IMG/VR virus record: IMGVR_UViG_3300028275_000006
Location: 148,543 to 212,542 of that record
Direction: 5' to 3' (one strand)
DNA length: 64,000 bases
Shown here: piece by piece, positions 3,890 through 51,309 of the stretch
Numbering within the stretch: the stretch's first letter is position 1
Layout: each line of letters opens with the position of its first letter
Notes under the pieces: generated by a model
Database searches by the model: none
Told to the model about the DNA's origin: nothing
Seen by the model: the letters and a program-made list of their open reading frames with translations, nothing else
Position numbers and translations under genes: made by a program

Positions 3890-5941
3890 TTATTTTTCAT
3901 GTGCTATGAATTCACCATTCCAATTATCTGGAAGGTTCTGTTCTTTCATAAACTCGCAACGTTCAATCCAGATTTTGTAGTACTTGTCCATTTGTCCACC
4001 AAAGTTGCCTTTTAGTTTTTTACACATAGCGGCTGCTTCGTCGAACTTCTTTTGTTTATACAAGGCATGCATCAACTCGTGCTGTACTTTATCTTTACTG
4101 TAATCTTCACCTTTGGTTCTTAATGCTGTATAGATTAAGTCTGCTACAGTTTTGCCTTTAGGTTGTAAGTTATCTAGCATTAGATAGAAGAAGTCATCTT
4201 TAGTACGGTTGTAAGTTTCAGCACCGATGATACATAACACGCCATAGGCCTTACAACGTGCTTCTAAACGAGCGGCGGTTGAAACCATGTCACCTAAGAT
4301 GTCGTAACTATGTCTGTCAGTTGATCCCATCTCACCAATAAAGCCAATACCTGAGTTACAACCCCAACCCATTGCGGCTGGTGGTAAGCCTTGTGCTTCC
4401 ATTAGTTTAGTATACTCATCAACAGCATCTAACATCTGTAAACCAACAGCAACAATAGTACGGGCATGATTAGGATCTTCAATCGGAGCACCGTGTATGT
4501 GCATACTTGCGTCACCTACATACTTTATGACCATACCCTTGTTGTCCATGATAGGCTGACTAATAGCATCCATGTAACCGTTCATATACTTGCCTAATCC
4601 AGCAACATCATCACCGTAGTGTTCTCCAATGGGTGTAAAGCCACGCAAGTCACTGAACATAACGGATACGTCTTTACGCACACCACGCTTGATTAGGTCT
4701 GGATCTTTTTGTAGCATTTCTACTACTTCCTTACTACAGTATCCAGCGAACTGTTTCTTAATTGCCTGTTTCTGTAAAAACTCGCTTATAAACTTAACGC
4801 CATAACAATGAAGAGCAACGATAATAAGGCCAAACGCGATCGCAGTCGCGTCTCCCAAGACGAGCCAATTATTGAAAGCGTAGATAGTACCAGGAACGAT
4901 GGCACCAACAATAACCACAGTAGCACCAATGCCAACATAAGTCCACCTCGATAAGAAAATTAATAATATGCCAAGTGATACTAATGCTAAAATTTCAACC
5001 CCGTCGGCATAGTCGGGACGTTGAATAACAATGCCGTTAACCATTGTACCAATTACTGCGGCCTGCACTTCGTGAGGAAATACAGCACCTTTGCTTGTCG
5101 GTAACGGATTACTAATACCAGCGGCAGTAGGACCTACAATAACGACGGCGCCACCTAAATCTTTTGGAAGTTTAACAGCACTAACGCTATGAGCTTCTTG
5201 GCTCCAATCGATCCAAATTCTTCCTAAACTATCTGTAGCAATAGGACCAAACTTTGGAATACGCATTTTCTCAACGCCGCCTTCAAAAAGTTTTACTTGG
5301 AAGGTAGAGTCTCCTGCGGCGACTCTAAGTGTCTCTAAACTCAATGCTGGATATAATTTGCCGTCTACAGTAACAATTAACGGCATGCGGCGATTAACAC
5401 CATCTACTTCTGGAAGTGTTCCTGTAATGCCAACACCTGCGGCATTTTGTTCTAGTTGAGGAACGTTGGCGATTAGTCCCGGGTATTGAATAATTTGATC
5501 TAGATGTTCTGGACCTAGTACAGCCGATCCTGGAACACGTGGTGTATTCTTTGTTTTCTGTGCTGGCGCACTTCCTAGTACTACAGGGAACTCTTTTAGA
5601 GTTTGTCCTAGCGCACCATCTCCACCAGTACGATCTGTCTCTGGCATAAGAACATTAAGTACAACAAGTCCTGCATTTCTTTGGTATAGTTCCTTCACAA
5701 GTTTAGCATATTCTGCTCTTGGTAAGGGCCACTGACCATATTTGTCTAACGTGGCTTCGTCGATATTTACAGTAACTATGTTGTTAACTGTAACTTCTTT
5801 ACTTGTAATTAATGTGTCAAAATAACGTAGTCTTACGCTTTCAACAAATGTAGGATCTGCAACTCTGACACCAACAACTAGTGCTAGAGTTAGTAAAGCA
5901 GTCCATGGACTTACTAGTATTTTTTTGAATTGTATTTTCAT
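3890..5941 (-). CDS. CHASE2-domain class III adenylate cyclase
   Basis: N-terminal TM, periplasmic CHASE2 (GQWPLPR, DGVNRRMPL), 3 TM, then FSDLRGFT, IKYVGD, YDILGD, AARLE. Confidence 0.92.
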   Translation of the reverse strand: MKIQFKKILVSPWTALLTLALVVGVRVADPTFVESVRLRYFDTLITSKEVTVNNIVTVNIDEATLDKYGQWPLPRAEYAKLVKELYQRNAGLVVLNVLMPETDRTGGDGALGQTLKEFPVVLGSAPAQKTKNTPRVPGSAVLGPEHLDQIIQYPGLIANVPQLEQNAAGVGITGTLPEVDGVNRRMPLIVTVDGKLYPALSLETLRVAAGDSTFQVKLFEGGVEKMRIPKFGPIATDSLGRIWIDWSQEAHSVSAVKLPKDLGGAVVIVGPTAAGISNPLPTSKGAVFPHEVQAAVIGTMVNGIVIQRPDYADGVEILALVSLGILLIFLSRWTYVGIGATVVIVGAIVPGTIYAFNNWLVLGDATAIAFGLIIVALHCYGVKFISEFLQKQAIKKQFAGYCSKEVVEMLQKDPDLIKRGVRKDVSVMFSDLRGFTPIGEHYGDDVAGLGKYMNGYMDAISQPIMDNKGMVIKYVGDASMHIHGAPIEDPNHARTIVAVGLQMLDAVDEYTKLMEAQGLPPAAMGWGCNSGIGFIGEMGSTDRHSYDILGDMVSTAARLEARCKAYGVLCIIGAETYNRTKDDFFYLMLDNLQPKGKTVADLIYTALRTKGEDYSKDKVQHELMHALYKQKKFDEAAAMCKKLKGNFGGQMDKYYKIWIERCEFMKEQNLPDNWNGEFIAHEK

Positions 5942-6474
5942 TTTTTAAATCCTGGCTTTGGTAAGTGGTTGCGGCCGTAACTAATTCTACTGCCTATAAT
6001 TTGTTCTAATGCTGTATGTAAGGCTTGTCCTGATAAATGTTTACGCAACCATTTTTCTGCTAAGTTGTTAATAATCTTTTCATTAGCGTGTGCAAAGCCG
6101 CCTTTACTTTTAGCGTGTACATAAGCGTGATATGCTTCGTGGGCCGCAACAGCAACGTCTCGTGCCGCGGTGCTGTCTAGATTTGGTAAGTTGATACTGC
6201 CAACGCCGTCGCCTGTATCCCTAAACATTGGATCTCCGCTACTCTGGTAGACATAATACATTCCAGGACCTAATTCGTCATCATCGTCAGTTACTCTATC
6301 TCTACCTAGAATATTTCTAACTACATCATATGCTGTCCAAAGCGTGGCTGCAGGTTCTCTGCTTAATTTTGTAGTTGGAAGCATTATTTTATCTTCAGGA
6401 TCGAAGTCACCATATCTTGCTTTTAAATCGGCGTCACTTGCTTCTGCTTCTTTTATAAATTCTTTTGCTCTCAT
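5938..6474 (-). CDS. MRAKEF-family protein with HExxH zinc-metalloprotease-like motif; true start 6474
   Basis: ATG at 6474 gives MRAKEFIKEA; HEAYH with downstream NEKIIN. Confidence 0.7.
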   Translation of the reverse strand: MRAKEFIKEAEASDADLKARYGDFDPEDKIMLPTTKLSREPAATLWTAYDVVRNILGRDRVTDDDDELGPGMYYVYQSSGDPMFRDTGDGVGSINLPNLDSTAARDVAVAAHEAYHAYVHAKSKGGFAHANEKIINNLAEKWLRKHLSGQALHTALEQIIGSRISYGRNHLPKPGFKK

Positions 6475-6614
6475 GATCTTGGTGCCGCGCCGTTTCGAGT
6501 AGCAGGATCCCATGAGTGGCAACCCTTGGGTCGTCCGTCTTTGTCGCAAAATGCTATTCCGGCGCAGCCTGCTAAGGTTGTAATAATTGCTAATATTAAG
6601 ATGTTTTTCAGCAT
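6471..6614 (-). CDS. 47-aa lipoprotein (MLKNILILAIITTLAG-C...) missed by the ORF track
   Basis: Lipobox LAGC; TAAATA 4 nt upstream; ATGA overlap with next gene. Confidence 0.75.
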   Translation of the reverse strand: MLKNILILAIITTLAGCAGIAFCDKDGRPKGCHSWDPATRNGAAPRS

Positions 6615-6632
6615 CCAATATTTAGTTAGATT

Positions 6633-10129: not shown

Positions 10130-10138
10130 GGAACCCTC

Positions 10139-11113: not shown

Positions 11114-11196
11114 CGTTTTTACAGAATTAGGTTATCTTCCCTAACTCGCTCCTTGGTCTAAGACCATTAAAAAATTTAAAGTGCTACCTCTCTTTC

Positions 11197-12366: not shown

Positions 12367-12369
12367 GTC

Positions 12370-13002: not shown

Positions 13003-13023
13003 ATTAATTAACATACTAGTTAA

Positions 13024-13861: not shown

Positions 13862-15415
13862 TTAACGGATTGCGAAACCCATTTTACCAACTGGTCTTCT
13901 TGTAGCGTAGAAGTTACTGCTGGCATCCAATTTAATTGTGCCCGTGAATACTGGAGGATAGATAACTTCAAAATTGGAGAAGTATGCTCCATTTGATGGT
14001 TTACCTTCAGCGTCCTTAGTAGGCTTCTGTTGTAATGAAGTTTTGACTTGTAACATATTGGAACGTTCCAGAACTGCTTTGAAGAAAGCATCTGTCTTGT
14101 AGTCCTTGTTTACTTTATTTGCTGTGCCAGTTGCTACTGCGGCTAATAAATGCCAACCAATTCTGTAGTCTGGTCTTGTCGAATCGTCTGTGCCTTTATA
14201 AACTAACAATCCTTTTAAGTCGCCTAGTGTTTCGTCATCAACATGCGGCTGATCGCTGTCAATGATTTCCATAATTTTTTCTGCTTGTGTACCATCGATG
14301 ATGCCTACTTTGACACCTAATTCTAATGCACCAGCAATAGAACCATTTCGTTTCCATTGTGCGCTTTTAGCCACATAACTCATGTCAGGGTCTTTAATAA
14401 TGTTTACAATGTCTAGTAGCTCTTGGAAGCCTGGGTTGACTTTAGGATCAAACAATCCTTCATAACGTTGCGGGTATGCCGCTATATCGTCTACCACACC
14501 AGATACAGATGCCTTTGCGCCGCCTTGCTTGTCTTTGGAACTTACACGAATCTTCACATCACCTGAAAACTTCAAATAACTATCGTATAGTTTTTCAGCA
14601 GGATCGTTTGGAAATTCTACACCAACGGCTTCTTCAAACTTCAAACCCATTCCGGCTTCGGCCTGTTGCCATGCACCACTTAAGAACTTTTTCTTAATTA
14701 ATGAAATTGGTGCGGCTGTTTCACCTAAATCAATTTCGTAACTCTTAGCATAGTCGCCGGCGCCGGGGACAGGATTACTGCTACCAGAAGCAACAGCCTG
14801 CAATAGTTGTACTACCTGTTGTTTAATAGCATCTGCTAGATCATCACGCTCTTGAATAGAACCTTGCACTTGTGTAGGAATATCATCTACAGCAATGGTT
14901 GTATTAGTAGGAATAATTCCAACAGGTTTTAAATTAGTTAGAGCACGTTGTTGTACTCCAGAAATTTTATCTTCCTCTCCTGCTTTGCCGCTTAGTTGTA
15001 CATAACCAGTTAGGTCTGAAAACTGTTTAGTCTGTAAGAAGATTGGATAAGCACCTGGCTTCTTAGCAGGCTTAAGAGCGATCCATGCTATGTTCTTTTT
15101 AGATTTTTCATCTTTAAAAATCATTACTAATGCGGCACCTGCTTTTTCAGGTATGCTTAGTCCGCCCACTGGCGGAAGTGTTAGTGCGTTAGATACTGCT
15201 ACATTGTTAGCCTTCACATAGTCCATAATCTCTGGAACTAGTTCTTGATAATTGTCTCGCTTGTCTACGTCTTGTGGAAACACTTGAGATGCAATCATAT
15301 GAATAACATTTCCATCTGCATTTTTAAATGCTACACGTTTGCCACGGCCGGCTTCTTCTGCACGGCGGGCCATGCCGCCTTCAGATTCAAATAAAATAAA
15401 TTCTTTTGCTCTCAT
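13862..15415 (-). CDS. MRAKEF-family 517-aa protein, possible PD-(D/E)xK nuclease-like core
   Basis: N-terminus MRAKEFILFES; LYDSY...IRVSSK resembles a D...(E/S)xK motif (weak). Confidence 0.55.
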   Translation of the reverse strand: MRAKEFILFESEGGMARRAEEAGRGKRVAFKNADGNVIHMIASQVFPQDVDKRDNYQELVPEIMDYVKANNVAVSNALTLPPVGGLSIPEKAGAALVMIFKDEKSKKNIAWIALKPAKKPGAYPIFLQTKQFSDLTGYVQLSGKAGEEDKISGVQQRALTNLKPVGIIPTNTTIAVDDIPTQVQGSIQERDDLADAIKQQVVQLLQAVASGSSNPVPGAGDYAKSYEIDLGETAAPISLIKKKFLSGAWQQAEAGMGLKFEEAVGVEFPNDPAEKLYDSYLKFSGDVKIRVSSKDKQGGAKASVSGVVDDIAAYPQRYEGLFDPKVNPGFQELLDIVNIIKDPDMSYVAKSAQWKRNGSIAGALELGVKVGIIDGTQAEKIMEIIDSDQPHVDDETLGDLKGLLVYKGTDDSTRPDYRIGWHLLAAVATGTANKVNKDYKTDAFFKAVLERSNMLQVKTSLQQKPTKDAEGKPSNGAYFSNFEVIYPPVFTGTIKLDASSNFYATRRPVGKMGFAIR

Positions 15416-16320
15416 TCACAGTTCCAACGTTTACGTGCTTTGCAGATTGCCTTGTCTGGTGTCTTAGTGCAATCAATATTGTGCATTTTCTTTTGGCCAT
15501 CACTTCTAGCACAAAAACTTGATCTACGCTTACTTGCCTTAGATCCTTTCTTTAATTTGCTAGGAGGTGTAGTGACTGCTGTTTTTAATTTACTACCAGG
15601 ATGTTCTCTACGATATGCTTTAACGGCTTTACTGCTCATGCCATCGGTTTTGTCTTTCTTATTAACCTTCTGCCAATCTTCTGACATACCTTCTGGGCCA
15701 ATTTGAACTAACCATTCTAATTCATCGTCTGCATCTCTAACACTGAAGAATTTAACATTAGGAATCTTCTTAGCCGCAAACCATTTGTTAGCCACTTTAA
15801 CCATTAGGGCACGATGTTGACGATCATTAACATCCGGTTCATATCCGCCTGTTAAGTTTGCCCACAATGCACTTGGATTGCCATGGCGATCGTAACCCAA
15901 CAATTCACGCCATTGTTGTTGTAAGCGATCTGGCACATACTGATCCAATTCAGTGTCGCTCATCCACTCTCGGCCAATATCGACACCTTCCGCCATGGCG
16001 GCTTCAGTTAAGTCTTCTGGGGCAAAACCAATATAACTCTTACCATGCTCATCGCCAGACTGCACAACAAATGCGCCGCCTTCTTCTGATTCGATTTCGC
16101 CAATTTCCCAACCCATACGATTTAATAGTTTTTCAACTTTTTGTTGTATGTCGTCATCGCCATTGTACCAAATACGAGCGTACTTGAGTAATGTTTCTTC
16201 TTCGTCGCCACTATTATCCGGCGCAAATTCTTTTACATTTTGCTTTTTCTTTTTAGCAATAGCGATAGCGGCTTGTTGTGCGGCATTGGTTGCTTCTGTG
16301 ATGAATTCTTTTGCTCTCAT
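15412..16320 (-). CDS. MRAKEF-family modular protein with basic Cys-containing C-terminal domain seen in T4-like phages
   Basis: MRAKEFITEA; C-terminal GSKLKTAVT...RRSSFCAR...CKARKRWNC. Confidence 0.7.
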   Translation of the reverse strand: MRAKEFITEATNAAQQAAIAIAKKKKQNVKEFAPDNSGDEEETLLKYARIWYNGDDDIQQKVEKLLNRMGWEIGEIESEEGGAFVVQSGDEHGKSYIGFAPEDLTEAAMAEGVDIGREWMSDTELDQYVPDRLQQQWRELLGYDRHGNPSALWANLTGGYEPDVNDRQHRALMVKVANKWFAAKKIPNVKFFSVRDADDELEWLVQIGPEGMSEDWQKVNKKDKTDGMSSKAVKAYRREHPGSKLKTAVTTPPSKLKKGSKASKRRSSFCARSDGQKKMHNIDCTKTPDKAICKARKRWNCE

Positions 16321-16343
16321 GGTAAAATCCGTCTATTCTGTAT

Positions 16344-17024
16344 TTAGCGAATTTCTGGGAACAAACATTCCTGTATGAATACCCTAACATCCTCTTCATC
16401 TAAGCCTAAACTAGCCATTACACGTGGAGTATGTGGGTTACATTTTTGATTGATTGCGTAGTAGTTCTGCGCTTCTGTGGTATTTTCAGTAGTATTATTA
16501 GTTTCTGCTACAGTTTCTAAGTAATGTGCCAGTGTATCTTTAGCCATTTCTATAATCTGCGCTAGTTCTTCTTCGCTCTGCACATTACCTGCGGCTACCA
16601 TGCTAGGGCTGAATATGTTGGTAGCCCATTCTGGTAGTTGGCGTTCTCTGCGCCATTCGAGTCGTTTAACATAATCAGCAAACCATTCCATCATAGGATG
16701 ATTAGAATCTCCTGCTTTGCTGTAATCATGAAAACAGCCAGTAATCTTATTCTTGCCTGCTACAACGTCAAAGCCGTAAATTGGTGCTGGATTGTGTAAG
16801 TGTGGGAAGATGCAACAATGCATCATCCAGAGTCCTTTGGTTTCTCTAGCATCCACAACATCAACGTGAGCACGGCGATAAGACCCACTGGTCCAAACAC
16901 GATTAACCCAACCAGGCTGATTAAAGCGATCCATGCCCGGTTCAAAGATTTCTGTTCCTGTTTCATTAAAACTGCTTTCTAAAAGATGCTGAACTTCAAT
17001 CAGCGTGTCCCATACTTTACTCAT
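16344..17024 (-). CDS. pcyX: ferredoxin-dependent bilin reductase (PcyX/PcyA-like)
   Basis: RRAHVDVVD, LWMMHCCIFP, PIYGFDVVAG, FHDYS, LPEWATNIFS, NPHTPRVM; adjacent to heme oxygenase. Confidence 0.85.
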   Translation of the reverse strand: MSKVWDTLIEVQHLLESSFNETGTEIFEPGMDRFNQPGWVNRVWTSGSYRRAHVDVVDARETKGLWMMHCCIFPHLHNPAPIYGFDVVAGKNKITGCFHDYSKAGDSNHPMMEWFADYVKRLEWRRERQLPEWATNIFSPSMVAAGNVQSEEELAQIIEMAKDTLAHYLETVAETNNTTENTTEAQNYYAINQKCNPHTPRVMASLGLDEEDVRVFIQECLFPEIR

Positions 17025-35688: not shown

Positions 35689-36017
35689 GAGGCCATTGCT
35701 GTATTTGTTGCGTGTTTTGCCATTTGTGCAACAGCGTCACTGCCTGTGTCGCCGTCTACTGGACCTTGTGGTGGTGTTTGATTTTTAGTCTTTAGTTCAA
35801 TGCCGTTTTGATCAAATCGTGCTACTAATTTTTGTAGATTAGGATCTGCATCGAAGGTTAATTTAAATGTGTCGTAGTCGAATTCTTCTTGGCCAATGTT
35901 TGTCATGAAACGATTAATTTCGTCCCATCTAAAATTGCCTGGAATGTTTTTGCTATCGGCTTTACCGATCAAACTCCTAAGAATTAGGATTAGGTTTGGA
36001 TCGGTTGCCTCAATTAC
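35685..36017 (-). CDS. start-less ORF, probable -1 frameshift extension of 36014..36901
   Basis: Frame open from 36047; no ATG/GTG before TTG 35972, and that TTG is only 1 nt from AGGAG. Confidence 0.6.
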   Translation of the reverse strand, partial: VIEATDPNLILILRSLIGKADSKNIPGNFRWDEINRFMTNIGQEEFDYDTFKLTFDADPNLQKLVARFDQNGIELKTKNQTPPQGPVDGDTGSDAVAQMAKHATNTAMAS

Positions 36018-36023
36018 TTTTTT
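35958..36023 (-). promoter_or_regulatory. candidate -1 frameshift signal: A_AAA_AAG plus downstream hairpin
   Basis: Heptamer 36023-36017; hairpin 36009-35958 (GGC/GCC, ACCGAT/ATCGGT, CAAAC/GTTTG, TCCTAA/TTAGGA). Confidence 0.7.
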
Positions 36024-36901
36024 TTTGGTGCTAGTAAACTTGCTAGTTTACGGCTAAACTCGATTGATTCACGAGTAGCACGACCTGCGGGCTCTTCGCC
36101 ACCTGCCGCTGGAGCAGCCGCTCCTGCTTCTTCTTCACCGCCAACTACTGTGCCTGATTCAGCACCTGCTTCTGGTTCTTCTGCGCCTGCTTCTGGTGCT
36201 GGCTCTGCGCCCATTGTTGGAGCGGCTCCTTCACCTTCGCCTGTTAAGATAGCAACTGCTTGTGTTAGTTGCTGACGTGAACTTTCTAATGCTGTGTAGA
36301 TAGTTGCAAGGGCTGGTTTAACAACTCCCTCGAACTCCATTGATGTATCACTGCCCATTTCGTCTCTTATAGAGTCAATTAATTCTAACATTGATTCGGC
36401 CTGCATATTTGCTGTGTCTTCCATCCAGCCTGTAACGCGGTCAACCATGTCACGAGCGGCCATGATTAACTCGGCCTTTTCTTCTTCGCCTTCACGTAGT
36501 ACAGATTCTACTTGTACTACGGCTTTGTTCTTATTAACTTTATTCTGTAATTCTTCTGGAAGATCTTCAAATGCGATAACACCTTGCTCTACTTTTTCTA
36601 ATACCATGCTTTCCATTTCAGTATAGCCGCTGTCAGTAGTCATTTCGTTGCTACGCTCTTCGATAGCACGATTTAACACATCTAGGAACAGTTTGTTCTT
36701 AGAATATGTTTCGTCTTCGTAGACAGCATTGTAGCTCTCGCTGGCTTCAAACTGACTAATCTTTGTACGTAACTTGTTACGTGCATCTTCTAACTGTTCA
36801 AGAGTGAAACTCTCTAAATCAATTTTCTGTCCAAATTGCTGGGCTACGCTTTCGTTTAACGCCTTGGCAGTTAATGGTTTGTTAAGTTCTGTAATACGCA
36901 T
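36014..36901 (-). CDS. acidic coiled-coil protein, probable prohead core/scaffold-like
   Basis: Glu-rich, heptads, many (L/I/V)xE sites; late promoter TATAAATA at 36932-36939. Confidence 0.55.
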   Translation of the reverse strand: MRITELNKPLTAKALNESVAQQFGQKIDLESFTLEQLEDARNKLRTKISQFEASESYNAVYEDETYSKNKLFLDVLNRAIEERSNEMTTDSGYTEMESMVLEKVEQGVIAFEDLPEELQNKVNKNKAVVQVESVLREGEEEKAELIMAARDMVDRVTGWMEDTANMQAESMLELIDSIRDEMGSDTSMEFEGVVKPALATIYTALESSRQQLTQAVAILTGEGEGAAPTMGAEPAPEAGAEEPEAGAESGTVVGGEEEAGAAAPAAGGEEPAGRATRESIEFSRKLASLLAPKKK

Positions 36902-36934
36902 GGTTAAAATCTTCCTGTGAAGTTGTTTTATTAT

Positions 36935-37378
36935 TTATACAATCGACGAGTAGAACAGGTTGTCGATTCGAGCCTTGGCTGTCTTAGCATAATCCTTGAC
37001 TAACTCAAATCTCCAGTAAGCACTTTCCCTAGTCACAGGGTCCTTTGCGTTCTGGGCTGTTTTTCTGTAAAACTGTGAATCTATATAGTTCTTTCTAAAA
37101 ATCTCATCGTTGTTTTTAATATCATCGATGCTGTGTTTTTTGCCTTTTTCGTGCATTTTGCATATAGCAAAAGCACTTACTTTTAAAAATACTGTGGCCA
37201 CGTGAATTTTGCGTTTGTCTGCTAAAATTACGTTCCAATTATCGTCTGTACCTTTTACAATGATATACTTCTTGTATCGTATCTGACGTTTGTTTACTGC
37301 TACAAAGATGCCCTGCTTGACAACTATGTCATAGAGCATGGAATCTAAATCTGCGGCGGCTTGTTTAATATCAAACAT
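36935..37378 (-). CDS. hypothetical protein
   Basis: ORF track, coupled operon. Confidence 0.7.
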   Translation of the reverse strand: MFDIKQAAADLDSMLYDIVVKQGIFVAVNKRQIRYKKYIIVKGTDDNWNVILADKRKIHVATVFLKVSAFAICKMHEKGKKHSIDDIKNNDEIFRKNYIDSQFYRKTAQNAKDPVTRESAYWRFELVKDYAKTAKARIDNLFYSSIV

Positions 37379-37571
37379 TTGGATATACGTAAGAAGAATG
37401 TTTACCTTGTACTTTAATTAACAGACTCTTACGTATAAGACTTTCGATTATGGATTGCTCTCTTTCATTAAATCCTGCTAAGATGCTGGGCTCAGTGATA
37501 GTTTCAAGAAGTTCTTGTTCCTCCTTGCTGGTCCATACATCTATTTTTCTTACAAATTCGTTAATTTTCAT
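37371..37571 (-). CDS. small hypothetical protein (MKINEF...)
   Basis: ORF track, overlapping junctions. Confidence 0.65.
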   Translation of the reverse strand: MKINEFVRKIDVWTSKEEQELLETITEPSILAGFNEREQSIIESLIRKSLLIKVQGKHSSYVYPNV

Positions 37572-37831
37572 TTTAATTCAGCCATCTGCTTTTTAAGGTC
37601 AGTTATCTGTTTTGTTAAATCAGCGATTTGATCAGTAATTTCTTTTTTCTTGTCTTGCACTTCTTTTTGATGCTGTGCTATCTGTAACTGCATTTGTTTT
37701 TGCTGTGCGGCAGGATCCTGAGCAACCATTTGATTATTAGGATCCAGTGTGGCTCCTTGCGCTGTGGCTCCTGGAGCGGGCGCGGCACCTGGTGCTGGGG
37801 GTACTGCTTCTAATAAGTCTGATATTTTCAT
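37568..37831 (-). CDS. small coiled-coil protein (MKISDLLEA...)
   Basis: ORF track; Pro/Ala linker and Gln/Lys heptads. Confidence 0.65.
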   Translation of the reverse strand: MKISDLLEAVPPAPGAAPAPGATAQGATLDPNNQMVAQDPAAQQKQMQLQIAQHQKEVQDKKKEITDQIADLTKQITDLKKQMAELK

Positions 37832-41932: not shown

Positions 41933-41960
41933 AAAAAAGGACTCTTCGGAGTCCTTTTTT
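41933..41960. terminator. bidirectional intrinsic terminator
   Basis: AAAAAAGGACTC-TTCG-GAGTCCTTTTTT between convergent genes. Confidence 0.9.
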
Positions 41961-43371
41961 ATACTTGAGCGGCAAATATTGTGCCGCCTATCTTTTCGCC
42001 GCCAGCGGCTATCATCTTATCTCTAAATCCAATGTTAGTGCCTGCACCGTAGGCCGCACTAGAAGCCGCTGTAAAGTATTTGAGATTTGTTGGAACTTGC
42101 GGAAGAATATTAATTGCGCCATCTACAATGTTAGCCAATTGTCTATCAGTTGGGCCACGTGTAAAGTTAGCACTTGGGCCCGGATCAAATCTTGTACCAG
42201 TAACTGCTTGGAACTGATTTGGAGCTCTTAACACACTGATAACATTGTCGCCCCAATTACCTGTGCGTGTTCTGTTTAGGATAACGCCCATAACATAGGC
42301 TTGTTCTTTACTGTTATTGCTTGCTTCAGCAGTTGTAGCACGTAACAAGTAATTCCATTCTTTGTCGTCCATTGGACGTCCTAGATACTTTTCTGCTGTT
42401 GCTCTTGCCTTTTGCGTACTCTCGGTGCTAGTTAAGGCTGCAACTTCTTCAGCACCTCTGCTATAGTCTAATGACTTAACATCCTTGTTAGTACTCTTTG
42501 TTAAAGTAGCCAATACTTCAGGCTTGGCTTTGAGCATGGCGTTCATTTTATCCGCAGTTTGCTGATTAACAATTCCTGTTGCTTCTAAGCCATTCTTCTC
42601 TTGGAAGGTTTTGATAGCACCTGTTGTTTCTTTACCTTGAATCCCATCAACACCATATTTAGGTAAAGGTACGCCCAATGCTTCTAATGCCTTTTGTGCA
42701 TCTGCAATTAATGGGCCACGTTTGCCGTCTGGAACTTCTACACTAAATGGAACTGCCGTAGCATCTTTTTCTTTATTGTCTGCTGTATCTTTACTAGCAG
42801 GTGCGGCAATAGAAGAACCTGCTTGAAATAGTTTACTGTATCCGTTAAACGGGTGTATGCCATCGCCCTTGGCTATGTTTGGATCAAAGGTGTTTAGTGA
42901 ACCTAAAAACTTTGCTCCTGCGCCTGCGGCAATGCCGGATAGTTTTTGATTTGCGCCTGTGTAATCTACAGTCCATTGTTTACCATTAGTAAACTTTGTA
43001 GGCTTTTGCAAAGGTGTTTTGCCATCAGCAACACCAACTAGTGCTACCGATGCTCCTGCATCTTTTAACGCTTTAATCTGTTGACTAATTGGACCAAAGT
43101 TTTCCGATTGAATCTGTGTTCCGTCTTCTGTTTCTACTTTACCACTGTTAGCGGCTCCACTACTTAAAATAACAATAGCACCTTTTGCTTTGCCACTTTT
43201 AACAAAGGGCGTTACAAGATTTTGTAGAACAAATGTAGTGTTTTTTCCAGGATTAGTGTATTCTTTGCTAACGCCACCGGCGCCAGCAATGCCATTGGCA
43301 ATACTGTCTCCAATTACGTAAACGTTGGATTTTGATTCAAAAAGTTTGGATAAGAATTCTTTGGCTCTCAT
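41959..43371 (-). CDS. MRAKEF-family fusion: SGNH hydrolase, PG-binding domain, SleB-like cell wall hydrolase
   Basis: VIGDS...DGIHP; VDGIQGKETTGAIKTFQ..NGLEATG; TTAEA...VILNR...NQFQAV. Confidence 0.82.
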   Translation of the reverse strand: MRAKEFLSKLFESKSNVYVIGDSIANGIAGAGGVSKEYTNPGKNTTFVLQNLVTPFVKSGKAKGAIVILSSGAANSGKVETEDGTQIQSENFGPISQQIKALKDAGASVALVGVADGKTPLQKPTKFTNGKQWTVDYTGANQKLSGIAAGAGAKFLGSLNTFDPNIAKGDGIHPFNGYSKLFQAGSSIAAPASKDTADNKEKDATAVPFSVEVPDGKRGPLIADAQKALEALGVPLPKYGVDGIQGKETTGAIKTFQEKNGLEATGIVNQQTADKMNAMLKAKPEVLATLTKSTNKDVKSLDYSRGAEEVAALTSTESTQKARATAEKYLGRPMDDKEWNYLLRATTAEASNNSKEQAYVMGVILNRTRTGNWGDNVISVLRAPNQFQAVTGTRFDPGPSANFTRGPTDRQLANIVDGAINILPQVPTNLKYFTAASSAAYGAGTNIGFRDKMIAAGGEKIGGTIFAAQV

Positions 43372-43462
43372 AGTCTTATTTATGTAAACTTCTCTGTTGG
43401 GTTAGGCGTTATTATATTATAGCACTTAAAAAGGTGGATTACTATGTTGATGAGGACCAATT

Positions 43463-44667: not shown

Positions 44668-47600
44668 TTATCGAGCGATCTCTGTAATACGAAGTGTTAG
44701 TGCTGTTGATGAATTTGTAACGGTTATGCTATCGTCCGCTGAGTCTCTACGAACACCAACGGTAATAGTCTTTGCTGTGGTACTTGAATTTGTATATCTA
44801 CCCGTTAGCGGAAATAAATTACCTGTTCTACCGCTTTCATTACTTCTTGTCATTTGACGAGCGTAGACTATTTCAGAACCATCTACTTTGATACGAGAAA
44901 AATAACTGTCTGTACCAGCACCACCACTATCTGATGCCGCTCTATAGTCTGCCACGTGAACGTGTATGATCAAGTAACTTGAATTGCTGGTCGGTGTATA
45001 ACTGTAGGTAAGAAGATCTGTGTCGCTGGTGCTAGTAGCCACTGTAGTATTATTAACAGTAAACTCGCTGTTGTTCAACATAGTATCTTTGATGACTTGT
45101 CCAGCTCTCCAAGCACCTGCTTGTATAAATCCAGTAGTGGCCAAGTTACCTGTAGTATCTACAGCCATCTTTACTGCGCCGCCACTTTCATTTAGGTTGT
45201 TAGTCACACGGAACAGTTGTCCGCTTAGGACAGTGAATGACCCGTTGTAACTATCAACAGCCCAGTTATTATTGTTGGCATAATACATCAACACACCCGG
45301 AGTGTCTGTAGTGCCGTTGTCTAGGGCAATATCACCAGTGCCCAGTGTTTTGGTGTATGTACCAGTGCCCGCTTTAACAGCACTGGCAATGTTTGTAGTG
45401 CCACTGCTGTTGCCAATGTTTAGAGTAGTTGCGGCACCTGCAAAGTTAACGGTAGTTGCTGTTGTGTTAAAGATATTAGCACTAGTGTTTCCGGTTAATA
45501 AATTCTGTGCTGTAACATCGCCGGTACTGGTAGAGAACCCGCCGGCATAGATAGTGCCAACTGAGTTGATACCGCCACCAAGATATATGTTACCAGCAAC
45601 ACCTACACCACCAGATACTTTCAATGCTCCAGTTGTTGTGTTTGCGCTGTTAGTAGTATCTGTAATGCTAACTGCACCACTAGATGTTAAACCAGTTAAT
45701 GTTCCTACACTAGTCAAACTACTGTTTACCACAGTAGATTTTAATGTTACGCCAGTTAGAGTATCTGCGGCTGCTGTAACGGTAATGTTTGCGCTACCAT
45801 TAAAACTTACACCGTTAATATTACGAGCAGTTTGTAGAGTAGTTGCTGTAGTAGCATTACCAGTATAGGCTGTTGTTTGTACAGTACTATCTGGGAATGT
45901 TATCTGTCCAGCCTTGTCAAATACCCAAGTCTTGATAGACCTTACACTTGCTGTTCCTGATGACACATAAAGAGTAACACCTGAAGTATCAGTTGTTACA
46001 TAACTGTCAAAAGGAAGTCCTGCTCCAATAGTAGTGGCTTTCCAATACAAATTAGAACTAGATGTATCACCACTGCTCTTTACGCCAATACTGTTAGTGC
46101 CGCTGTCAAGAGTATTACTAGGCAGAGTTGTGGTTCCATCGTTGTTAAACTTCCATTCATAGTATGGTGCTGGGCCGCCTGTTTGGATTGTTAAACCAGT
46201 TGCTTGTCTAAATGTATTTGTGTTAGATAAGATTAAACTGCCGGCGCCATCAAAGCCTAACGAACTAGTAAAGCCACTGGCTTTGATACTGTTGACTTCA
46301 ATAGTAGCACTAGAGCCTAGACTAATACTTGTACCGTTAACTGTGACTGCGCTGTTGGCTAGTTTGCTGTTGGCTATTGATCCAGCCAACATAGTATTAG
46401 TTACTGTACCTGTGTCACCAGTTGTTATCACTGTACCAGTTGTTGCTGGCATTGTGATAGTAGTTGTACCAGCAGCCGCACTTGCTTTCAATACAGTAGT
46501 GCCACTTGTTGATCCGTTGAATGTAGCACCAGTACCACCTATGGTTGGTAATGTCAGCGTTTTGTTAGTCAGTGTCTCACTGCCCGCCAGTGTAGCAAAA
46601 TCTCCATCAGTCAGTGCTGAGTTAAACTGAGCAGTGGTTCCGCTGACTGTATTAGAACCTAGAGCAATAGTTTTGTTGGTTAGTGTTTGGCTACCAGTTA
46701 GGGTTGCTACTGTTGAATCAATAGCGATAGTAACTGCTGAACTACCGTTATAAGTTGTGCCGCTTAATCCTGTGCCAATAGTTAAGGCATTTAAGTTACT
46801 GCCCAGACTTACACCAGATATAGTGCTGTTGGCTAGTTTAGCATTGGCGATTGATCCTGCTAACATTGTATTTGTAACAGTACCAGTATCACCTGTAGTA
46901 ACTACTGTGCCTGTAGTTGCTGGTAAAGTAATAGTTGTAGTACCTGCGGCTGCTGATGCTTTTACTACTGTAGTACCACTTGAGCTGCCGTTGAACGTAG
47001 CGCCAGTACCACCTATCGTTGGTAGTGTTAATGTCTTGTTGGTTAATGTTTCAGCACCAGTTAGAGTAGCATAGCCACTGTCGTTAGTCAGTTGGCTAAC
47101 GTTAGTTGGAACTGTAGGAGCACCAGTTAACTTACTGTAGGCAAGACTTGTTATCCAGGCAGGGTTAGCATACGATCCTGTTGAGTATAATCCGTTGGTA
47201 ACTGTTGCCGCATTACCATCAATGCTTACACCAGTTAGTGTTTGGCTAGCACTTAGTCTTGTAAAGTCTAAACTGGTTGTGCCAATATAAGCACTAGAGT
47301 AGATAGTTGGCTTGTTTGTTAAGTCTGTGTAACTGCCACTAAACAATGTAGGTGTACCAGTTAGTTTGCTGTAGGCTAGGCTTGTTATCCACGCAGGGTT
47401 ACTGTATGTTCCTGTAGTGTAGACTCCATCAGTTACTGTACCGGCATTGCCATCAATGCTTACACCTGTTAAAGTTTGGCTAGCACTTGTTCTGTTTAGT
47501 GCTATGCTGGTTGTACCAATGTAGTGCGTGTCTGCTCGTAGGGCTACGGTTGAGTCTACAGCGATAGTAACTGCGGTACTACCATCAAAACTTGTACCAC

Positions 47601-50600
47601 TCAATCCACTGCCAATAGTTAGTGCGTTAGTTGTACTGGCTGTAACAGTAATGCCAGCAGAGCCGTCAAAGCTCACATTGTTAATTGTTCTTGCTGTGCC
47701 TAGTTTAGTTGCTGTTGCGGCATTGCCTGTAATGCTACCTACAATGCTGTTAGTTGCTGTTAGACTTGTGATAGTCACAGCACCGTTCATAGTTGTTGTA
47801 GTTGTAGCACTACCTAAGTTAAGTGTAGCAGTACCACTTGTAACACCCGTACCAATGTTAATAGTACTTGTACCGCCTGCTAAGTTTGTGCCAATGTTTA
47901 AATTCTTAACATAGGTAGCACCCGTTGCCGCGGTAAGAATGTTTAGTGTGTGATTAAAAACACTACTACTAGGACCCAATGTTAAAGAAGGTGTTGAGGC
48001 ATAAGCATTGGTACTGGTTGTGCTGTCAAGGTTAGTAATGTAAGCAGTACTAATACTTGGACTTGAGTTAGTAACTAATGATGTACCTGTTCCAACCAAT
48101 CCACTCACTAACTGTGTATAAGACAAGTTAGCAGTTGCGTTAGATGCTGTGCTGACTACGGTGAATGTAGTTTGTCTTGCTGTCGCTATAGTATTAGAAA
48201 CTATTTGTGTGCCGGTACTCAACTGATAAGTTATAGTTGCTGCCGAAGTAAAGAATGTAATCTGTTGCCCAGCAGTTAGCGTAGTCAAGTCTGGCAGTTT
48301 GAATATGTGTGTACCGCTTATTGATCCTGTAACATTGTAATATCTAGTTATAGTTGCGGCATCTAATGTTGTAGTAGCACCTGCTGTTGCCACAACGGTA
48401 GTAGTACTTGTATCCAAACTAACTGTGACTGCGGCACTACCATTGAAGGTGCTGGCTGTGCCTGTTAAGCCTCTACCGATAGTTAGTGCGTTGGCTGTGT
48501 TGACTGTGCCACTGCTACCTAAACTTATACTTGTTCCATTAACTGTGATTGTGCTGTTGGCTAACTTGTTATTGGCAATACTGCCGGCCAACATAGTATT
48601 AGTAACAGTACCAGTGTCTGTGGTTAGAACAGCATTAGTAACCTTACTACCTGCTAAACTGGTAATCCAACTTGGATTAGCGTAACTTCCTGTAGTGTAA
48701 ACACCATTAGTCACGGTGGCAGCATTGCCAGCAATACTGTCTGGAACTACGATACTAGATGTTTGTTCAACTGTTAGAATAACTGCCGGGGCTCGTGGCA
48801 CTGAAGGACTTGTTTGTGCGGCAATGGTCTTAAGGTAAACATCAGTGCTAGGACTCTGCCAATATATCTGTATCTGTTCTCCTGCTTCAACAGTTAGAAT
48901 GAACGGATTGATAGCAACCAACTTGCCCAATGATCCTGTATCAGCATCGATAGTATAAACCACTGTACTGTCATCTACGTTTGAAGTAACACCATTGACT
49001 GTAGTCTTTAACCAAACACTGACATCCTGTTCTGCGGCATTGTCATTGACAAACTGTAAACTGAATACGATAGAATATGTGCCAGCATAACTGAACGTGA
49101 TCTTAGATCCGTTCTGTATTGTAATACCGTTGGCTTCATAAGTTCCGCCAATTAATACTAGGTTAGCACTGGTAGCACCTGCGTTAGACTGTTGTGCTGT
49201 GACATCATAGAAACTACCGTAGTAGCCTAGAGCACCTGTAGCACCTCCACCCGATCCGCCTGGTATCCAACTATGTGTAACAGAGTCATAGGTTAATACT
49301 TGTCCTGTGATAGCACCTGTGACGTTAACATCTGTCAGTGCTGACAAGGATGTAGTCAGTGTTGGTTGATTAGTTACGTTGGCCCAATCAACAGAGCCAG
49401 TCCAAGCAGTTGTCTGTGTAGTTTCGTCAGCAAAGTTTATGCTTGGAACAGAGATACCAGACTCTACTGACAGTACACCAGTAGCATAGTCTAAGACAAA
49501 TGCGTTGTCGTGCCAAGCACCATCGTTGCGAGTAATATAGAAACTGTGATCGTTTCTGCGACCCATTGCCAGTTTAGGATCTCCGTTCCATTCAAATGTA
49601 AATGTATTAAATCCTGGACTAGCCGAAACTTGATTAAAGTTAATATCTGGTTCGCTACCAATAACACGAAGAATACCAACACCATCCTGTAAGACACTGG
49701 CTGTCAATGTCATAGCCGGTTGGTTAGTGTTATTACTTTCAAAAGCAAATGTACCGTTGAAGGTTGGATTGTTAATTGTTGGACTGGTAAATGTTTTATT
49801 GGTTAGTGTTTCTTCGCCAGTTAAAGTAGCATAGCCAGATAATGCGGCACTGGTAATAAATCCTGCGTTGTTAGTTAAGTCGCCGGTATCTAATGGAATA
49901 GTTGGAGCATCGGTTAAATCATTCCAACTGTATGTTCCTAACCACGCTGTTGTCTGTGTAGTGTTGTCGTTGAATGTTAACTGTTTGCTCAGTTTAACTT
50001 CTGTACTACTAAATCGAATGACTTCTCTATCGCCTGTGGCTACATTGCCTGCTACAATCTTTGTGTAGGTATTAGCAATACTTGTACCTAATACTAGATT
50101 ACCTCCGCCAGCATTGCCACCTTGAACATACAACCAACCATCACGTTGTCCCACGTTGTCATATAGGCTATTCTCTGCTGTACCATCCCAGCTCGCACCG
50201 TTGATACCCATGTCAATGTAGTAGTCTGTGTCACTGCCATTAGGACTTGTTGCTACCCATTCTGTACTTGAGTGAGCACCGTCGCTGGTATTTTGGAAGT
50301 TATTCTGTGCGTAGTCGTTGACCTGTGCTTGACTTTGGATAACTGTATTTGGTAGTGCTGCCACACCTGCCGCACGTCCTGCGAATACTGCTGTGAATCC
50401 ATCAGCATCGCCAGGGAGGATACCTGTAGTGTGTAACTTGCCATTAGCATCAAGATTGATAGTGTTTAGATCAAAATTACTTTGAACTAGAAAGTTGCTG
50501 TCGTTTGACAGTTGGCTAACTGCTGTAGGTATGCTTGCTGATGTAATATAGCCGCGACTGGTTACATAACTTTGTGTAGCATAACTTGATAATGAACTGG

Positions 50601-51063
50601 ATGTTAGGTATCCGCTGTCGTTAGTAAATGAGCTAACATTTGTAGGCTTGCCAGTTAAGTCGGCGTAAGCACCACTGAATAGTGAAGGCTTGCCTGTGAC
50701 TGCGTCCCAACTTACACCTGTGATAAATCCTGTGTCGTTTGTAAGTTGGCTAACATTTGTTGGAACTGTAGGGGCACCTGATATACTAGAGTAGGGAACT
50801 GTGCCTACACTGATAACGCTGTTATCGATAGCAATAGTTGTGCCATCAATCTTAATACCACCTTTAACTGTGGTAGTTGCTGTAGGTAGCACATAACTAC
50901 TGCCGCCCGCTCCGCCTACGGCTAAACCGCCCGGAGTTTCACCGTCAGAGATGCGTATTGTATTGGTTATTCCATCGTACCAAAGACGGTCTTTTTCACC
51001 TATACGGGTGTCGCCGTCTTCGTAGTTTCTTCGTTGGGTTCGGAAATCTTGTGTAAATGACAT
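44668..51063 (-). CDS. long tail fibre/adhesin, 2131 aa, with internal repeats
   Basis: Mtd-like N-terminus, Thr/Gly-rich fibre repeats, GYYGSFYD domain, C-terminal receptor-binding-like domain. Confidence 0.85.
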   Translation of the reverse strand: MSFTQDFRTQRRNYEDGDTRIGEKDRLWYDGITNTIRISDGETPGGLAVGGAGGSSYVLPTATTTVKGGIKIDGTTIAIDNSVISVGTVPYSSISGAPTVPTNVSQLTNDTGFITGVSWDAVTGKPSLFSGAYADLTGKPTNVSSFTNDSGYLTSSSLSSYATQSYVTSRGYITSASIPTAVSQLSNDSNFLVQSNFDLNTINLDANGKLHTTGILPGDADGFTAVFAGRAAGVAALPNTVIQSQAQVNDYAQNNFQNTSDGAHSSTEWVATSPNGSDTDYYIDMGINGASWDGTAENSLYDNVGQRDGWLYVQGGNAGGGNLVLGTSIANTYTKIVAGNVATGDREVIRFSSTEVKLSKQLTFNDNTTQTTAWLGTYSWNDLTDAPTIPLDTGDLTNNAGFITSAALSGYATLTGEETLTNKTFTSPTINNPTFNGTFAFESNNTNQPAMTLTASVLQDGVGILRVIGSEPDINFNQVSASPGFNTFTFEWNGDPKLAMGRRNDHSFYITRNDGAWHDNAFVLDYATGVLSVESGISVPSINFADETTQTTAWTGSVDWANVTNQPTLTTSLSALTDVNVTGAITGQVLTYDSVTHSWIPGGSGGGATGALGYYGSFYDVTAQQSNAGATSANLVLIGGTYEANGITIQNGSKITFSYAGTYSIVFSLQFVNDNAAEQDVSVWLKTTVNGVTSNVDDSTVVYTIDADTGSLGKLVAINPFILTVEAGEQIQIYWQSPSTDVYLKTIAAQTSPSVPRAPAVILTVEQTSSIVVPDSIAGNAATVTNGVYTTGSYANPSWITSLAGSKVTNAVLTTDTGTVTNTMLAGSIANNKLANSTITVNGTSISLGSSGTVNTANALTIGRGLTGTASTFNGSAAVTVSLDTSTTTVVATAGATTTLDAATITRYYNVTGSISGTHIFKLPDLTTLTAGQQITFFTSAATITYQLSTGTQIVSNTIATARQTTFTVVSTASNATANLSYTQLVSGLVGTGTSLVTNSSPSISTAYITNLDSTTSTNAYASTPSLTLGPSSSVFNHTLNILTAATGATYVKNLNIGTNLAGGTSTINIGTGVTSGTATLNLGSATTTTTMNGAVTITSLTATNSIVGSITGNAATATKLGTARTINNVSFDGSAGITVTASTTNALTIGSGLSGTSFDGSTAVTIAVDSTVALRADTHYIGTTSIALNRTSASQTLTGVSIDGNAGTVTDGVYTTGTYSNPAWITSLAYSKLTGTPTLFSGSYTDLTNKPTIYSSAYIGTTSLDFTRLSASQTLTGVSIDGNAATVTNGLYSTGSYANPAWITSLAYSKLTGAPTVPTNVSQLTNDSGYATLTGAETLTNKTLTLPTIGGTGATFNGSSSGTTVVKASAAAGTTTITLPATTGTVVTTGDTGTVTNTMLAGSIANAKLANSTISGVSLGSNLNALTIGTGLSGTTYNGSSAVTIAIDSTVATLTGSQTLTNKTIALGSNTVSGTTAQFNSALTDGDFATLAGSETLTNKTLTLPTIGGTGATFNGSTSGTTVLKASAAAGTTTITMPATTGTVITTGDTGTVTNTMLAGSIANSKLANSAVTVNGTSISLGSSATIEVNSIKASGFTSSLGFDGAGSLILSNTNTFRQATGLTIQTGGPAPYYEWKFNNDGTTTLPSNTLDSGTNSIGVKSSGDTSSSNLYWKATTIGAGLPFDSYVTTDTSGVTLYVSSGTASVRSIKTWVFDKAGQITFPDSTVQTTAYTGNATTATTLQTARNINGVSFNGSANITVTAAADTLTGVTLKSTVVNSSLTSVGTLTGLTSSGAVSITDTTNSANTTTGALKVSGGVGVAGNIYLGGGINSVGTIYAGGFSTSTGDVTAQNLLTGNTSANIFNTTATTVNFAGAATTLNIGNSSGTTNIASAVKAGTGTYTKTLGTGDIALDNGTTDTPGVLMYYANNNNWAVDSYNGSFTVLSGQLFRVTNNLNESGGAVKMAVDTTGNLATTGFIQAGAWRAGQVIKDTMLNNSEFTVNNTTVATSTSDTDLLTYSYTPTSNSSYLIIHVHVADYRAASDSGGAGTDSYFSRIKVDGSEIVYARQMTRSNESGRTGNLFPLTGRYTNSSTTAKTITVGVRRDSADDSITVTNSSTALTLRITEIAR
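46350..48730 (-). repeat. intragenic protein repeats of the tail fibre (approximate bounds)
   Basis: Two ~75-aa copies TLTNKTLTLPTIGGTG...NTMLAGSIAN.KLANS (~46350-46580, ~46825-47055) and three GNA.TVT.G.Y.TG.Y.NP.WITSLA copies. Confidence 0.8.
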
Positions 51064-51102
51064 TAAACTATCTCACGTTTAATGTATTTACCGTAAAACG
51101 TA

Positions 51103-51309
51103 TCAGTGTTCGCTACGTGTAAGTTTTTGAATAACAGGACTGTCTTTGCCCTGTTCTGCTTTGTCCAGCTCTAAATGCTGTTGTAATGGCGGAACCATTA
51201 CAGGATCTGGGTCTTTTTCTTCGGCATCGTGGCTTTGTTTATCACTAGAGTTATCGTCTAGTGCATCAATTATATCTGCTAGTGATCTTAGGAATTCTGC
51301 GGCTCTCAT
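51103..51309 (-). CDS. small acidic protein starting MRAAEFL; likely start 51309
   Basis: TAAATA 5 nt upstream of ATG 51309. Confidence 0.65.
   Translation of the reverse strand: MRAAEFLRSLADIIDALDDNSSDKQSHDAEEKDPDPVMVPPLQQHLELDKAEQGKDSPVIQKLTRSEH

Follow-up and report, generated by a model that had tools for sequence, protein, structure and literature searches.

A short N-terminal tag on unrelated proteins of PA5oct-like jumbo phages resembles the capsid-targeting sequence of T4

Phage proteins that are injected with the DNA act before any phage gene is expressed. Those of T4 include the restriction-system inhibitor IPI* and Alt, which modifies the host RNA polymerase, and to our knowledge such proteins can be found outside a few model phages only by virion proteomics. 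Here we describe a short N-terminal tag, most commonly MRAKEFIxE, that begins otherwise unrelated proteins encoded in a 64-kb stretch of viral DNA (IMG/VR record IMGVR_UViG_3300028275_000006, positions 148,543 to 212,542; 40% G+C), called the window below, and in many further viral contigs. We consider it likely that this is a capsid-targeting and cleavage tag of the T4 type, used by jumbo phages related to PA5oct on a larger and more varied cargo than that of T4.

The T4 capsid-targeting sequence (CTS) is MKTYQEFIAE; the internal proteins (IPs) are cut once beside it, and fusion to it is enough for any protein to be packaged (PMC3012670). Its first 10 residues suffice, residues 4 and 7 serving targeting and residues 8 and 10 serving processing, and Asp at position 10 stops cleavage without stopping targeting (PMC9026906). 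Alt is a head-packed, injected ADP-ribosyltransferase that gp21 cuts at ITE-6 and LTE-619, and all gp21-type cuts follow a Glu (PMC5694885). The giant phages phiKZ, 201phi2-1 and SPN3US likewise cut many head proteins after the Glu of a short motif, and the SPN3US paralogs gp53 and gp54 carry an identical 15-residue N-terminus on diverged bodies (PMC5694885, PMC9026906). These phiKZ-type phages differ from the case described here in that their gp21-related S80 proteases recognize S/A-x-E motifs, their propeptides are often long, no one short tag spans their protein families, and their lineage is that of the chimalliviruses with a virion RNA polymerase. We found no paper on a tag like ours outside T4 and the phiKZ-type phages, and the string MRAKEF occurs in no searchable paper. 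The CTS principle is known, the T4 literature already hinting at its generality; what appears to be new is the sequence of the tag together with its clade and its scale.

Like the T4 CTS, the tag is a peptide of about ten residues at the N-terminus of otherwise unrelated proteins, with a basic position 2, a core E-F-I-x-E and an end that has the form of a gp21-type [IL]-x-E site. Because T4 residues 4 and 7 act in targeting and residues 8 and 10 in processing, F6, I7 and E9 of the tag align with F7, I8 and E10 of T4; with this one-residue offset, the hydrophobic residue or Ala at position 3 corresponds to T4 Y4. The tag is, however, one residue shorter than the T4 CTS and far more degenerate at positions 3 and 4. 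A Sec or Tat signal peptide was rejected on the grounds that the tag has 9 residues, two acidic positions and no h-region. The signal-peptide-like starts of neighbouring genes (MKKLLSLIALL...) are quite unlike it.

Five open reading frames (ORFs) of the window, all on the minus strand, start with MRA(K/A)EF, at 6474, 15415, 16320, 43371 and 51309, as had been reported in a preliminary description of this DNA. With an arrow at the putative cleavage junction, they encode proteins of 178 amino acids (aa) (5938..6474; MRAKEFIKE↓AEASD), 517 aa (13862..15415; MRAKEFILFE↓SEGG, start MRAKEFILFESE), 302 aa (15412..16320; MRAKEFITE↓A), 470 aa (41959..43371; start MRAKEFLSKLFES, tag MRAKEFLSKLFE↓S) and 68 aa, the last one acidic (51103..51309; MRAAEFL). 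The stop of the 302-aa gene overlaps the start of the 517-aa gene. Their bodies fall into separate BLAST clusters with no BLAST similarity outside the tag, which bears out the earlier view that the five proteins are unrelated. The 17-mer ATGAGAGCAAAAGAATT, said to be common to three of the genes, indeed has three exact copies and a fourth that differs at one position, while shuffles give 0.03. When the five starts are aligned from −100 to +60, likeness is limited to the first 7–9 codons and the upstream DNA is unrelated. For the gene at 6474, the mechanical ORF list begins at TTG 6618; in gene calls on public contigs, the ATG of MRAKEF is the start (178 aa) on two of the three contigs shown, and the third call starts 13 codons earlier (191 aa).

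A generalized pattern, ^M[RK][AFVIL].[ED][FIL], was applied to the ATG starts of ORFs of at least 40 aa. Eight starts in the window match, while the internal rate of 8.4e-4 per residue predicts ~0.08 N-terminal matches per ~95 genes. The three additional ORFs, again on the minus strand, encode proteins of 295 aa (36014..36901; MRITEL), 66 aa (37371..37571; MKINEF) and 87 aa (37568..37831; MKISDLLE↓A). They had been listed before as looser versions of the tag, and we assign them to the same class because close homologs of the 178-aa protein carry MRITELL, MKINELI or MKIHELL in place of MRAKEFI. A fourth loose version, MNVTEL (38556), was dropped, having N at position 2 in an ORF that can begin further upstream at TTG. 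Extending the same scan to seven flanking loci (~85 kb beyond the window) added only three unique matches, two of them doubtful.

The tag is widespread in viral contigs. An exact search of IMG/VR with the 17-mer returned at least 120 loci, and 118 of the 126 matches listed are ORF starts with a stop a few codons upstream. Since the 17-mer fixes only codons 1–6, the positions after codon 6 are independent evidence. Among the 119 unique proteins listed, 102 have I, L or V at position 7 and 99 have E at position 9; position 8 varies freely, and conservation ends at position 9. In a sequence-level test, [ILVMF]-x-E ends at residue 9 in 97 of them. Judged by sequence, this is the pattern of a short peptide that has a putative hydrophobic-x-Glu site at its end. 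The general form can be written M-[RK]-(A/I/F/L/V)-x-[ED]-[FLI]-[IL]-x(0-2)-E followed by a small residue.

The carriers of the tag are diverse. The 131 tagged proteins listed form at least 36 BLAST clusters (E<1e-4), with lengths across clusters from 54 to 668 aa and with differing Pfam domains. The view that the common start reflects descent only, through diverged paralogs that kept their N-terminus, is favoured by the biggest cluster: its 72 small proteins (114–138 aa), often encoded in tandem, are a true paralog family. The 36 clusters, however, have no BLAST link at 1e-4, and similarity stops abruptly at residue 9–10. The 0.08 matches expected against the 8 observed in the window, together with these unlinked clusters, led us to reject a chance match and a single paralog family, and descent or chance as the whole explanation is extremely unlikely.

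In the 1.75 Mb of sequence sampled, 387 tagged ORFs were counted. At one locus (L084, 3990–11752), 12 consecutive genes each start with a tag variant, the spellings including MRLFEL, MRATEF, MRAKEF, MRASDF, MKASEF, MRFLEI, MRADEF and MRANEF, and none has a Pfam family at E≤0.01; the locus looks like a dense 'cargo island'. Variable tandem arrays are also known for the T4 IP genes. On the other hand, T4 has 3 IPs, whereas the window holds 8 tagged genes in 64 kb, up to 12 stand in a row elsewhere and the cargo clusters number at least 36. The cargoes, moreover, are mostly not small basic proteins as the T4 IPs are, and the function of the tag is read from its sequence. We have likened the tagged proteins to IPI, IPII and IPIII as a working analogy and do not claim them as members of those families.

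Bacterial and archaeal genomes, 596 Gbp in all, were scanned with a degenerate MRAKEFIxE pattern, which matched 38 times. The MRAKEFI matches are for the most part internal, the main source being a single conserved protein of alphaproteobacteria. Only ~7 are at ORF starts, on short low-GC contigs of metagenome-assembled genomes, and at least two of these proteins match ones from viral contigs; the contigs concerned are probably mis-binned phage. As an N-terminus, the MRAKEFI-type peptide is a phage feature.

The identity of the 17-mer in three window genes raises the alternative that the conserved start is a feature of RNA or DNA, either an A-rich unstructured initiation region of leaderless or short-leader late mRNAs or a homology 'handle' for cassette recombination. 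A degenerate scan for any encoding of MRAKEFIxE returned at least 120 loci; of the 120 listed, 67 had not come up with the exact 17-mer and 53 had, which means that ~44% of these starts use the 17-mer, and codon 4 is AAA in 147 of 149 listed tags. Such codon uniformity speaks for a nucleic-acid element, as does the box TAAATA, which in 21% of tagged genes stands only 4–8 nucleotides (nt) upstream of the ATG and so suggests transcripts with almost no leader; cassette shuffling would agree with the crowding of tagged genes into islands. The Arg, Ala and Glu codons, however, vary synonymously, with CGA and CGT, GCT and GCC, and GAG all in use among the tags listed; conservation follows amino-acid class (I/L/V at position 7, E/D at 5, any residue at 8, E at 9); and the same promoter spacing precedes untagged genes too (9% of long ORFs). 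A recombination handle could coexist with a protein function and leaves the cleavage-site grammar unexplained.

Homolog families bear on the same point. In the family of the 517-aa protein, 116 of the 120 listed homologs keep the grammar while the bodies go down to ~35% identity (35–100%); M1, R2, E10 and S11 are invariant, position 4 takes many residues, and the spacer varies by 0–2 residues. In the family of the 178-aa protein, 118 of the 120 listed homologs keep it with bodies at 69–100% identity, although the tag is spelled MRAKEFI, MKIHELL, MRFDDLI, MRINELL, MRITELL or MKVYEIL, and in most of those listed the tag runs into the junction ..E↓A(E/A)ASD after at most two residues. In both families the junction Glu is followed by S or A among the listed homologs. 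As the spellings in the 178-aa family, such as MRAKEFI against MKIHELL or MRFDDLI, share almost no nucleotides, selection acts on the peptide. A pure DNA-level element was rejected in view of the synonymous Arg, Ala and Glu codons and the conservation by amino-acid class. The identical 17-mer is mostly codon preference and not a DNA-level element, and we regard the nucleic-acid explanation as very unlikely. Two homologs in the 178-aa family (P0153 and P0177) have an insert of ~50 residues between tag and body that ends in a second ..LEE↓A site; judged from sequence, their propeptide would be longer and would offer two candidate sites for cleavage.

The phages that carry the tag are relatives of T4. 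Megablast of 11 kb against 50,697 phage records gave no useful match, no deposited phage being close at the DNA level. The virion protein encoded at 52101–53723 of the window is 36% identical to a protein of the T4-like cyanophage S-T4. S-T4 shares only ~6 window genes and is therefore the wrong reference; more can be learned from three T4-related jumbo phages, PA5oct (Arenbergviridae), Phosso and Atu_ph07. Their terminases are 48–50% identical to that of tag-bearing contigs, and 136 of 155 tag loci of at least 5 kb have at least one ORF in common with PA5oct, 91 of them three or more. The window is syntenic with Phosso and with PA5oct at 150–181 kb, the run in common with PA5oct comprising a cluster of virion-protein homologs, an exonuclease (44% identity), gp243- and gp242-like genes, ribonucleotide reductase (RNR), PAAR, S21, Hsp20, ClpS, BaxI and a ClpP-like gene. 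The left flank of the window phage has rIIA/rIIB. Unlike T4, the tag-bearing phages are mostly PA5oct-like jumbo phages, uncultured and from river water.

PA5oct has the closest gene order among cultured phages and has an annotated virion proteome (PMC7318152). In the 225 kb of its sequence that we read, six annotated genes encode tag-like proteins. Five of the six (gp333, gp254, gp246, gp309 and gp279) are annotated as detected by electrospray ionization tandem mass spectrometry (ESI-MS/MS; MS below), compared with 93 of 461 proteins overall (20%), and a binomial estimate gives P about 0.002. The sole tag-like protein lacking the MS note, gp213, adjoins the ClpP-like gp212. In contrast to the window phage, PA5oct has only about six tag-like proteins and none of the MRAKEF form. 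In the main text of the PA5oct paper (PMC7318152) we found no mention of a tag, and 'N-terminal' has no match in it.

Three variant tags of the window have counterparts in this proteome or gene order. The MRITEL protein (36901) matches PA5oct gp247 (blastp, 28% identity, E 3e-8), PHROG 14154 'virion structural protein' and Phosso; gp247 is MS-detected and starts MFLKDVKITE↓S. The MKINEF gene (37571) belongs to the virion-protein-homolog cluster that lies upstream of the gene for the exonuclease. The corresponding PA5oct cluster includes the MS-detected gp254 (MRLDEI), a match at the level of the cluster, and the corresponding Phosso region encodes a 76-aa protein starting MRFYEIKGG. The start MKISDLLE↓A (37831) resembles (M)KIKDILVE↓S of the MS-detected gp246 and MKIKDILAE of a related contig (L161).

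Tagged genes are also linked with head genes. In PA5oct the head module consists of the portal gp334, gp333, gp332, the protease gp331, the scaffold gp330 and the capsid protein gp329. The PA5oct protease shares 42% identity with the protein that S-T4 has at the gp21 position of its T4-like head module, and 54% with the protease of L161. PA5oct has a gene for a late sigma factor, too. L161 (15 kb) contains the same portal, protease, scaffold and capsid module, its capsid protein being 67% identical to that of PA5oct, and after the module and a homing endonuclease come six consecutive tagged genes (MKIKDILAE, MRAHEFIIE, MRAIEFIIE, MRIAEFITE, MRFLEFINE and MRAKEFINE). Both capsid proteins have L-x-E at residues 5–7 and 17–19. 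A gp21-type protease and scaffold module is present in the tag-bearing contigs L161, L158 and L074 as well as in PA5oct, an arrangement like that of T4, though not found for the window phage itself. The small protein between portal and protease, at the position of T4 gp67, starts with MKINDIITE in PA5oct (gp333), MRAKELLCE in L074 and MNLFEIFE in L161. A search for related loci with the L161 protease returned near-identical contigs only.

These head links also bear on whether the tag could be a recognition signal for another phage machine, such as a Clp protease with its adaptor or a DnaK-type chaperone, and so act as a degron or folding handle that times activity in the cell. The window does encode a ClpP-like protein (330–893), ClpS, DnaK and Hsp20, a second ClpP-like gene lies in the flank, PA5oct annotates ClpX-, ClpA- and ClpS-like proteins, and gp213, the tag-like protein that adjoins gp212, is the one not seen by MS. 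Nevertheless, we judge this distinctly unlikely: the grammar fits the experimentally mapped positions of the T4 CTS, PA5oct particles are annotated with tag-like proteins that include a core-protein homolog between portal and protease, and six tagged genes stand directly after the head module of L161. As a separate observation, the ClpP-like protein of the window is homologous to PA5oct gp212, whose annotation reads 'head maturation protease' even though a true gp21-type protease exists in PA5oct as well.

The tagged proteins of the window differ in domains and folds. The 178-aa protein has an HExxH motif (H112, E113, H116) that is kept in all 120 listed homologs. Its AlphaFold model has a mean predicted local distance difference test (pLDDT) score of 74.2, with residues 1–12 below 50 and outside the fold; Foldseek against the Protein Data Bank (PDB) gave nothing at E≤0.001, the weak matches are mostly HExxH peptidases (M32, IrrE, minigluzincins), and a protein-atlas search gave a weak Peptidase_M78 lead. 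The protein may be a small zincin-like metallopeptidase, so the metalloprotease-like cargo of the preliminary description stays a candidate by virtue of the invariant HExxH and the weak fold matches. The 517-aa protein has no Pfam family, and its model (pLDDT 85.5; residues 1–9 disordered and outside the fold) had no match in the PDB at E≤0.001. A tblastn search of 50,697 phage records with this protein and one member of the small tagged family gave no match. The 302-aa protein has a basic C-terminal DUF6321 (Pfam, E 2e-10), a domain that also occurs untagged, again C-terminal, in a cyanophage S-T4 protein encoded between terS and a virion protein.

The tagged muralytic protein predicted before is indeed there: the 470-aa protein has an N-terminal GDS(L)-type motif, followed by PG_binding_1 (9.7e-14) and a SleB-like cell-wall hydrolase domain (Hydrolase_2, 1.7e-6), and matches endolysin PHROGs. 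A nuclease-like cargo, also predicted, was not recovered; no tagged nuclease was seen, and the nuclease-like ORF at 43825–44634 has a hydrophobic, signal-peptide-like N-terminus. The 68-aa protein clusters with proteins of 93–96 aa starting MRAKEFTIN... from five viral contigs, on one of which (L047) the gene lies just downstream of a homolog of the virion protein VSP540. Among 30 further tagged proteins, Pfam above the curated cut-off identified one ADP-ribosyltransferase and two amidoligases, besides a few weak sub-threshold matches. The first is a 200-aa protein starting MRAKEFIPE (L016; PF03496, E 9.5e-13) and, being an ADP-ribosyltransferase, is a functional counterpart of T4 Alt. Like Alt it would be an enzyme with a short N-terminal propeptide, and MRITE↓L of the window resembles the ITE-type site of Alt. 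Unlike Alt, it has no sequence homology to that protein, shows no sign of C-terminal processing and is much smaller.

In T4, gp22, gp67 and gp68 take part in assembly or scaffolding and are broken down or expelled when the head matures. The tag might likewise target proteins to the prohead core as parts of the assembly and not as cargo for delivery. The family at the gp67 position (gp333 in PA5oct and its L074 counterpart) fits this well, and so does the commonest tagged family, which is small, tandem and within a few kb of a terminase gene in ~40 loci. It is harder to reconcile with enzymes that have no plausible assembly role (the ADP-ribosyltransferase, the amidoligases, the HExxH protein and the muralytic enzyme), with the single cleavage-type site, at the tag junction, in both modelled bodies (517 and 178 aa), and with the annotation of PA5oct tag-like proteins as detectable in mature particles. 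We consider it unlikely that the tagged proteins as a whole are assembly parts.

Under the capsid-targeting interpretation, the tagged proteins would probably be made late. The tag would bind the scaffolding core of the prohead, by which any protein carrying it would be enclosed. A gp21-type prohead serine protease would then cut after the Glu of [IL]-x-E and free the mature cargo in the head, and the cargo would leave with the DNA at infection. That the tag is disordered in both AlphaFold models may be a hint of its removal.

Four of the tagged genes have, upstream on the minus strand, a box that resembles the T4 late promoter. CTAAATA (51315..51321) and CATAAATA (43377..43384) each lie 5 nt upstream of the ATG, at 51309 and 43371, respectively. 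TATAAATA (36932..36939), an exact match to the T4 late-promoter consensus, is 30 nt upstream of the ATG at 36901, and CTAAATA (16341..16347) is 20 nt upstream of that at 16320, near where metatranscriptome contigs end. Of the other four tagged genes, three directly follow an upstream gene, and no box precedes 6474. Riverine metatranscriptome contigs cover 13000–18900 at 100% identity with uneven depth, which is not proof of transcription. Across the tag-bearing loci L001–L198, the 9% of long ORFs with TAAATA 4–8 nt before the ATG are accompanied by a second peak at 17–25 nt. The spacing suggests that many late mRNAs in the PA5oct-like tag-bearing clade may be leaderless or nearly so.

The view of the tag as a portable T4-type CTS, first put forward in the preliminary description, has an observed basis in the grammar, the conservation at the protein level, the portability, the restriction to T4-related jumbo phages, the adjacency to head genes and the MS annotation of PA5oct. 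Several points weigh against it. We infer head loading, cleavage and injection in the window phage from sequence and by analogy, and N-terminal processing is not reported for PA5oct. Two of the eight window tags, MRAAEFL (51309) and MKINEF (37571), have no nearby [IL]xE. No such tags occur in S-T4, in which one window gene has its closest cultured relative. With plainly non-structural enzymes such as RNR and thymidylate synthase on the MS list of PA5oct, being 'MS-detected' does not prove that a protein is in the head. A head-packed peptidoglycan hydrolase is not an obvious fit, and the 470-aa protein could be an ordinary endolysin. The close-spaced TAAATA box is only ~2.3-fold enriched before tagged genes (21% against 9% of long ORFs).

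A further point on that side is that no portal, protease, scaffold, capsid or terminase gene was found in ~170 kb, made up of the window and ~105 kb of flank in a genome of 212–270 kb. The flanks were assembled by walking outward from both window ends along public contigs with proteins identical to those of the window. They hold a ClpP-like gene, an AAA protein, rIIA/rIIB, tRNAs, a ligase, the second ClpP-like gene, tail-fibre-like genes, a 3102-aa protein, a radical-SAM/sugar cluster and many small genes. Given the synteny with PA5oct, a gp21-type protease and scaffold are likely to be present in the window phage.

The surroundings of the tagged genes have features of their own. At 3119–12909 of the window is a block of genes with signal-peptide- or lipoprotein-like hydrophobic N-termini, which is unusual for a phage; it includes Peptidase_S11, a CHASE2-guanylate cyclase (3890–5941) and a FecR-like gene (9023–10129), and the tagged HExxH gene (5938–6474) lies inside it. 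Within ORF 6633–9026, the segment 7852–7912 matches phage tRNA-Thr genes by megablast (89–94% over ~50 nt); ARAGORN calls no tRNA there, the only one in the window being tRNA-Thr at 13736–13811. Host-like genes at 13024–26619 encode BaxI, a bilin-reductase-like protein, heme oxygenase, ClpS, Hsp20, DnaK, S21 and IscU/IscA-like Fe-S proteins. In the left flank (L131; 4921–5323, 11014–11087 and 16211–20059) are a 21-tRNA array, a separate tRNA with a CUA anticodon and a tmRNA-like call. The CUA-anticodon tRNA is an amber suppressor, labelled Pyl by ARAGORN, and could allow read-through of TAG in some genes.

Two giant ORFs encode 2131 aa (window 44668–51063) and 3102 aa (L256, from 12318 onward); the former has no Pfam family and none is on record for the latter. 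The 3857-aa virion protein of PA5oct adjoins its baseplate genes. At 54639–64000 and in the flanking loci L124 and L130, at least 12 radical-SAM genes occur with genes for a sugar epimerase, an aminotransferase and UDP-glucose dehydrogenase and with PIG-L-like genes. The run adjoins the virion-protein gene at 52101–53723 and may be a pathway for glycans or for hypermodification of DNA or protein.

If the tag is what we propose, a simple N-terminal pattern would list candidate injected effectors of uncultured PA5oct-like jumbo phages directly from metagenomes, and anyone engineering a cultured relative such as PA5oct would gain a packaging handle that is ready for use. The T4 CTS principle would then have a long history and wide use among T4-related phages, its function resting on the same residues. 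Whether the tag serves as an 'address label' that exposes the whole set of injected effectors of a large uncultured freshwater jumbo-phage clade could, in our judgement, go either way. If it does, that set would run to hundreds of proteins from dozens of families, nearly all lacking a Pfam domain, and the injected arsenal would go far beyond the three IPs and Alt of T4, taking in ADP-ribosyltransferases, amidoligases, HExxH peptidases and a wall hydrolase, with islands of up to 12 fast-evolving effector genes.

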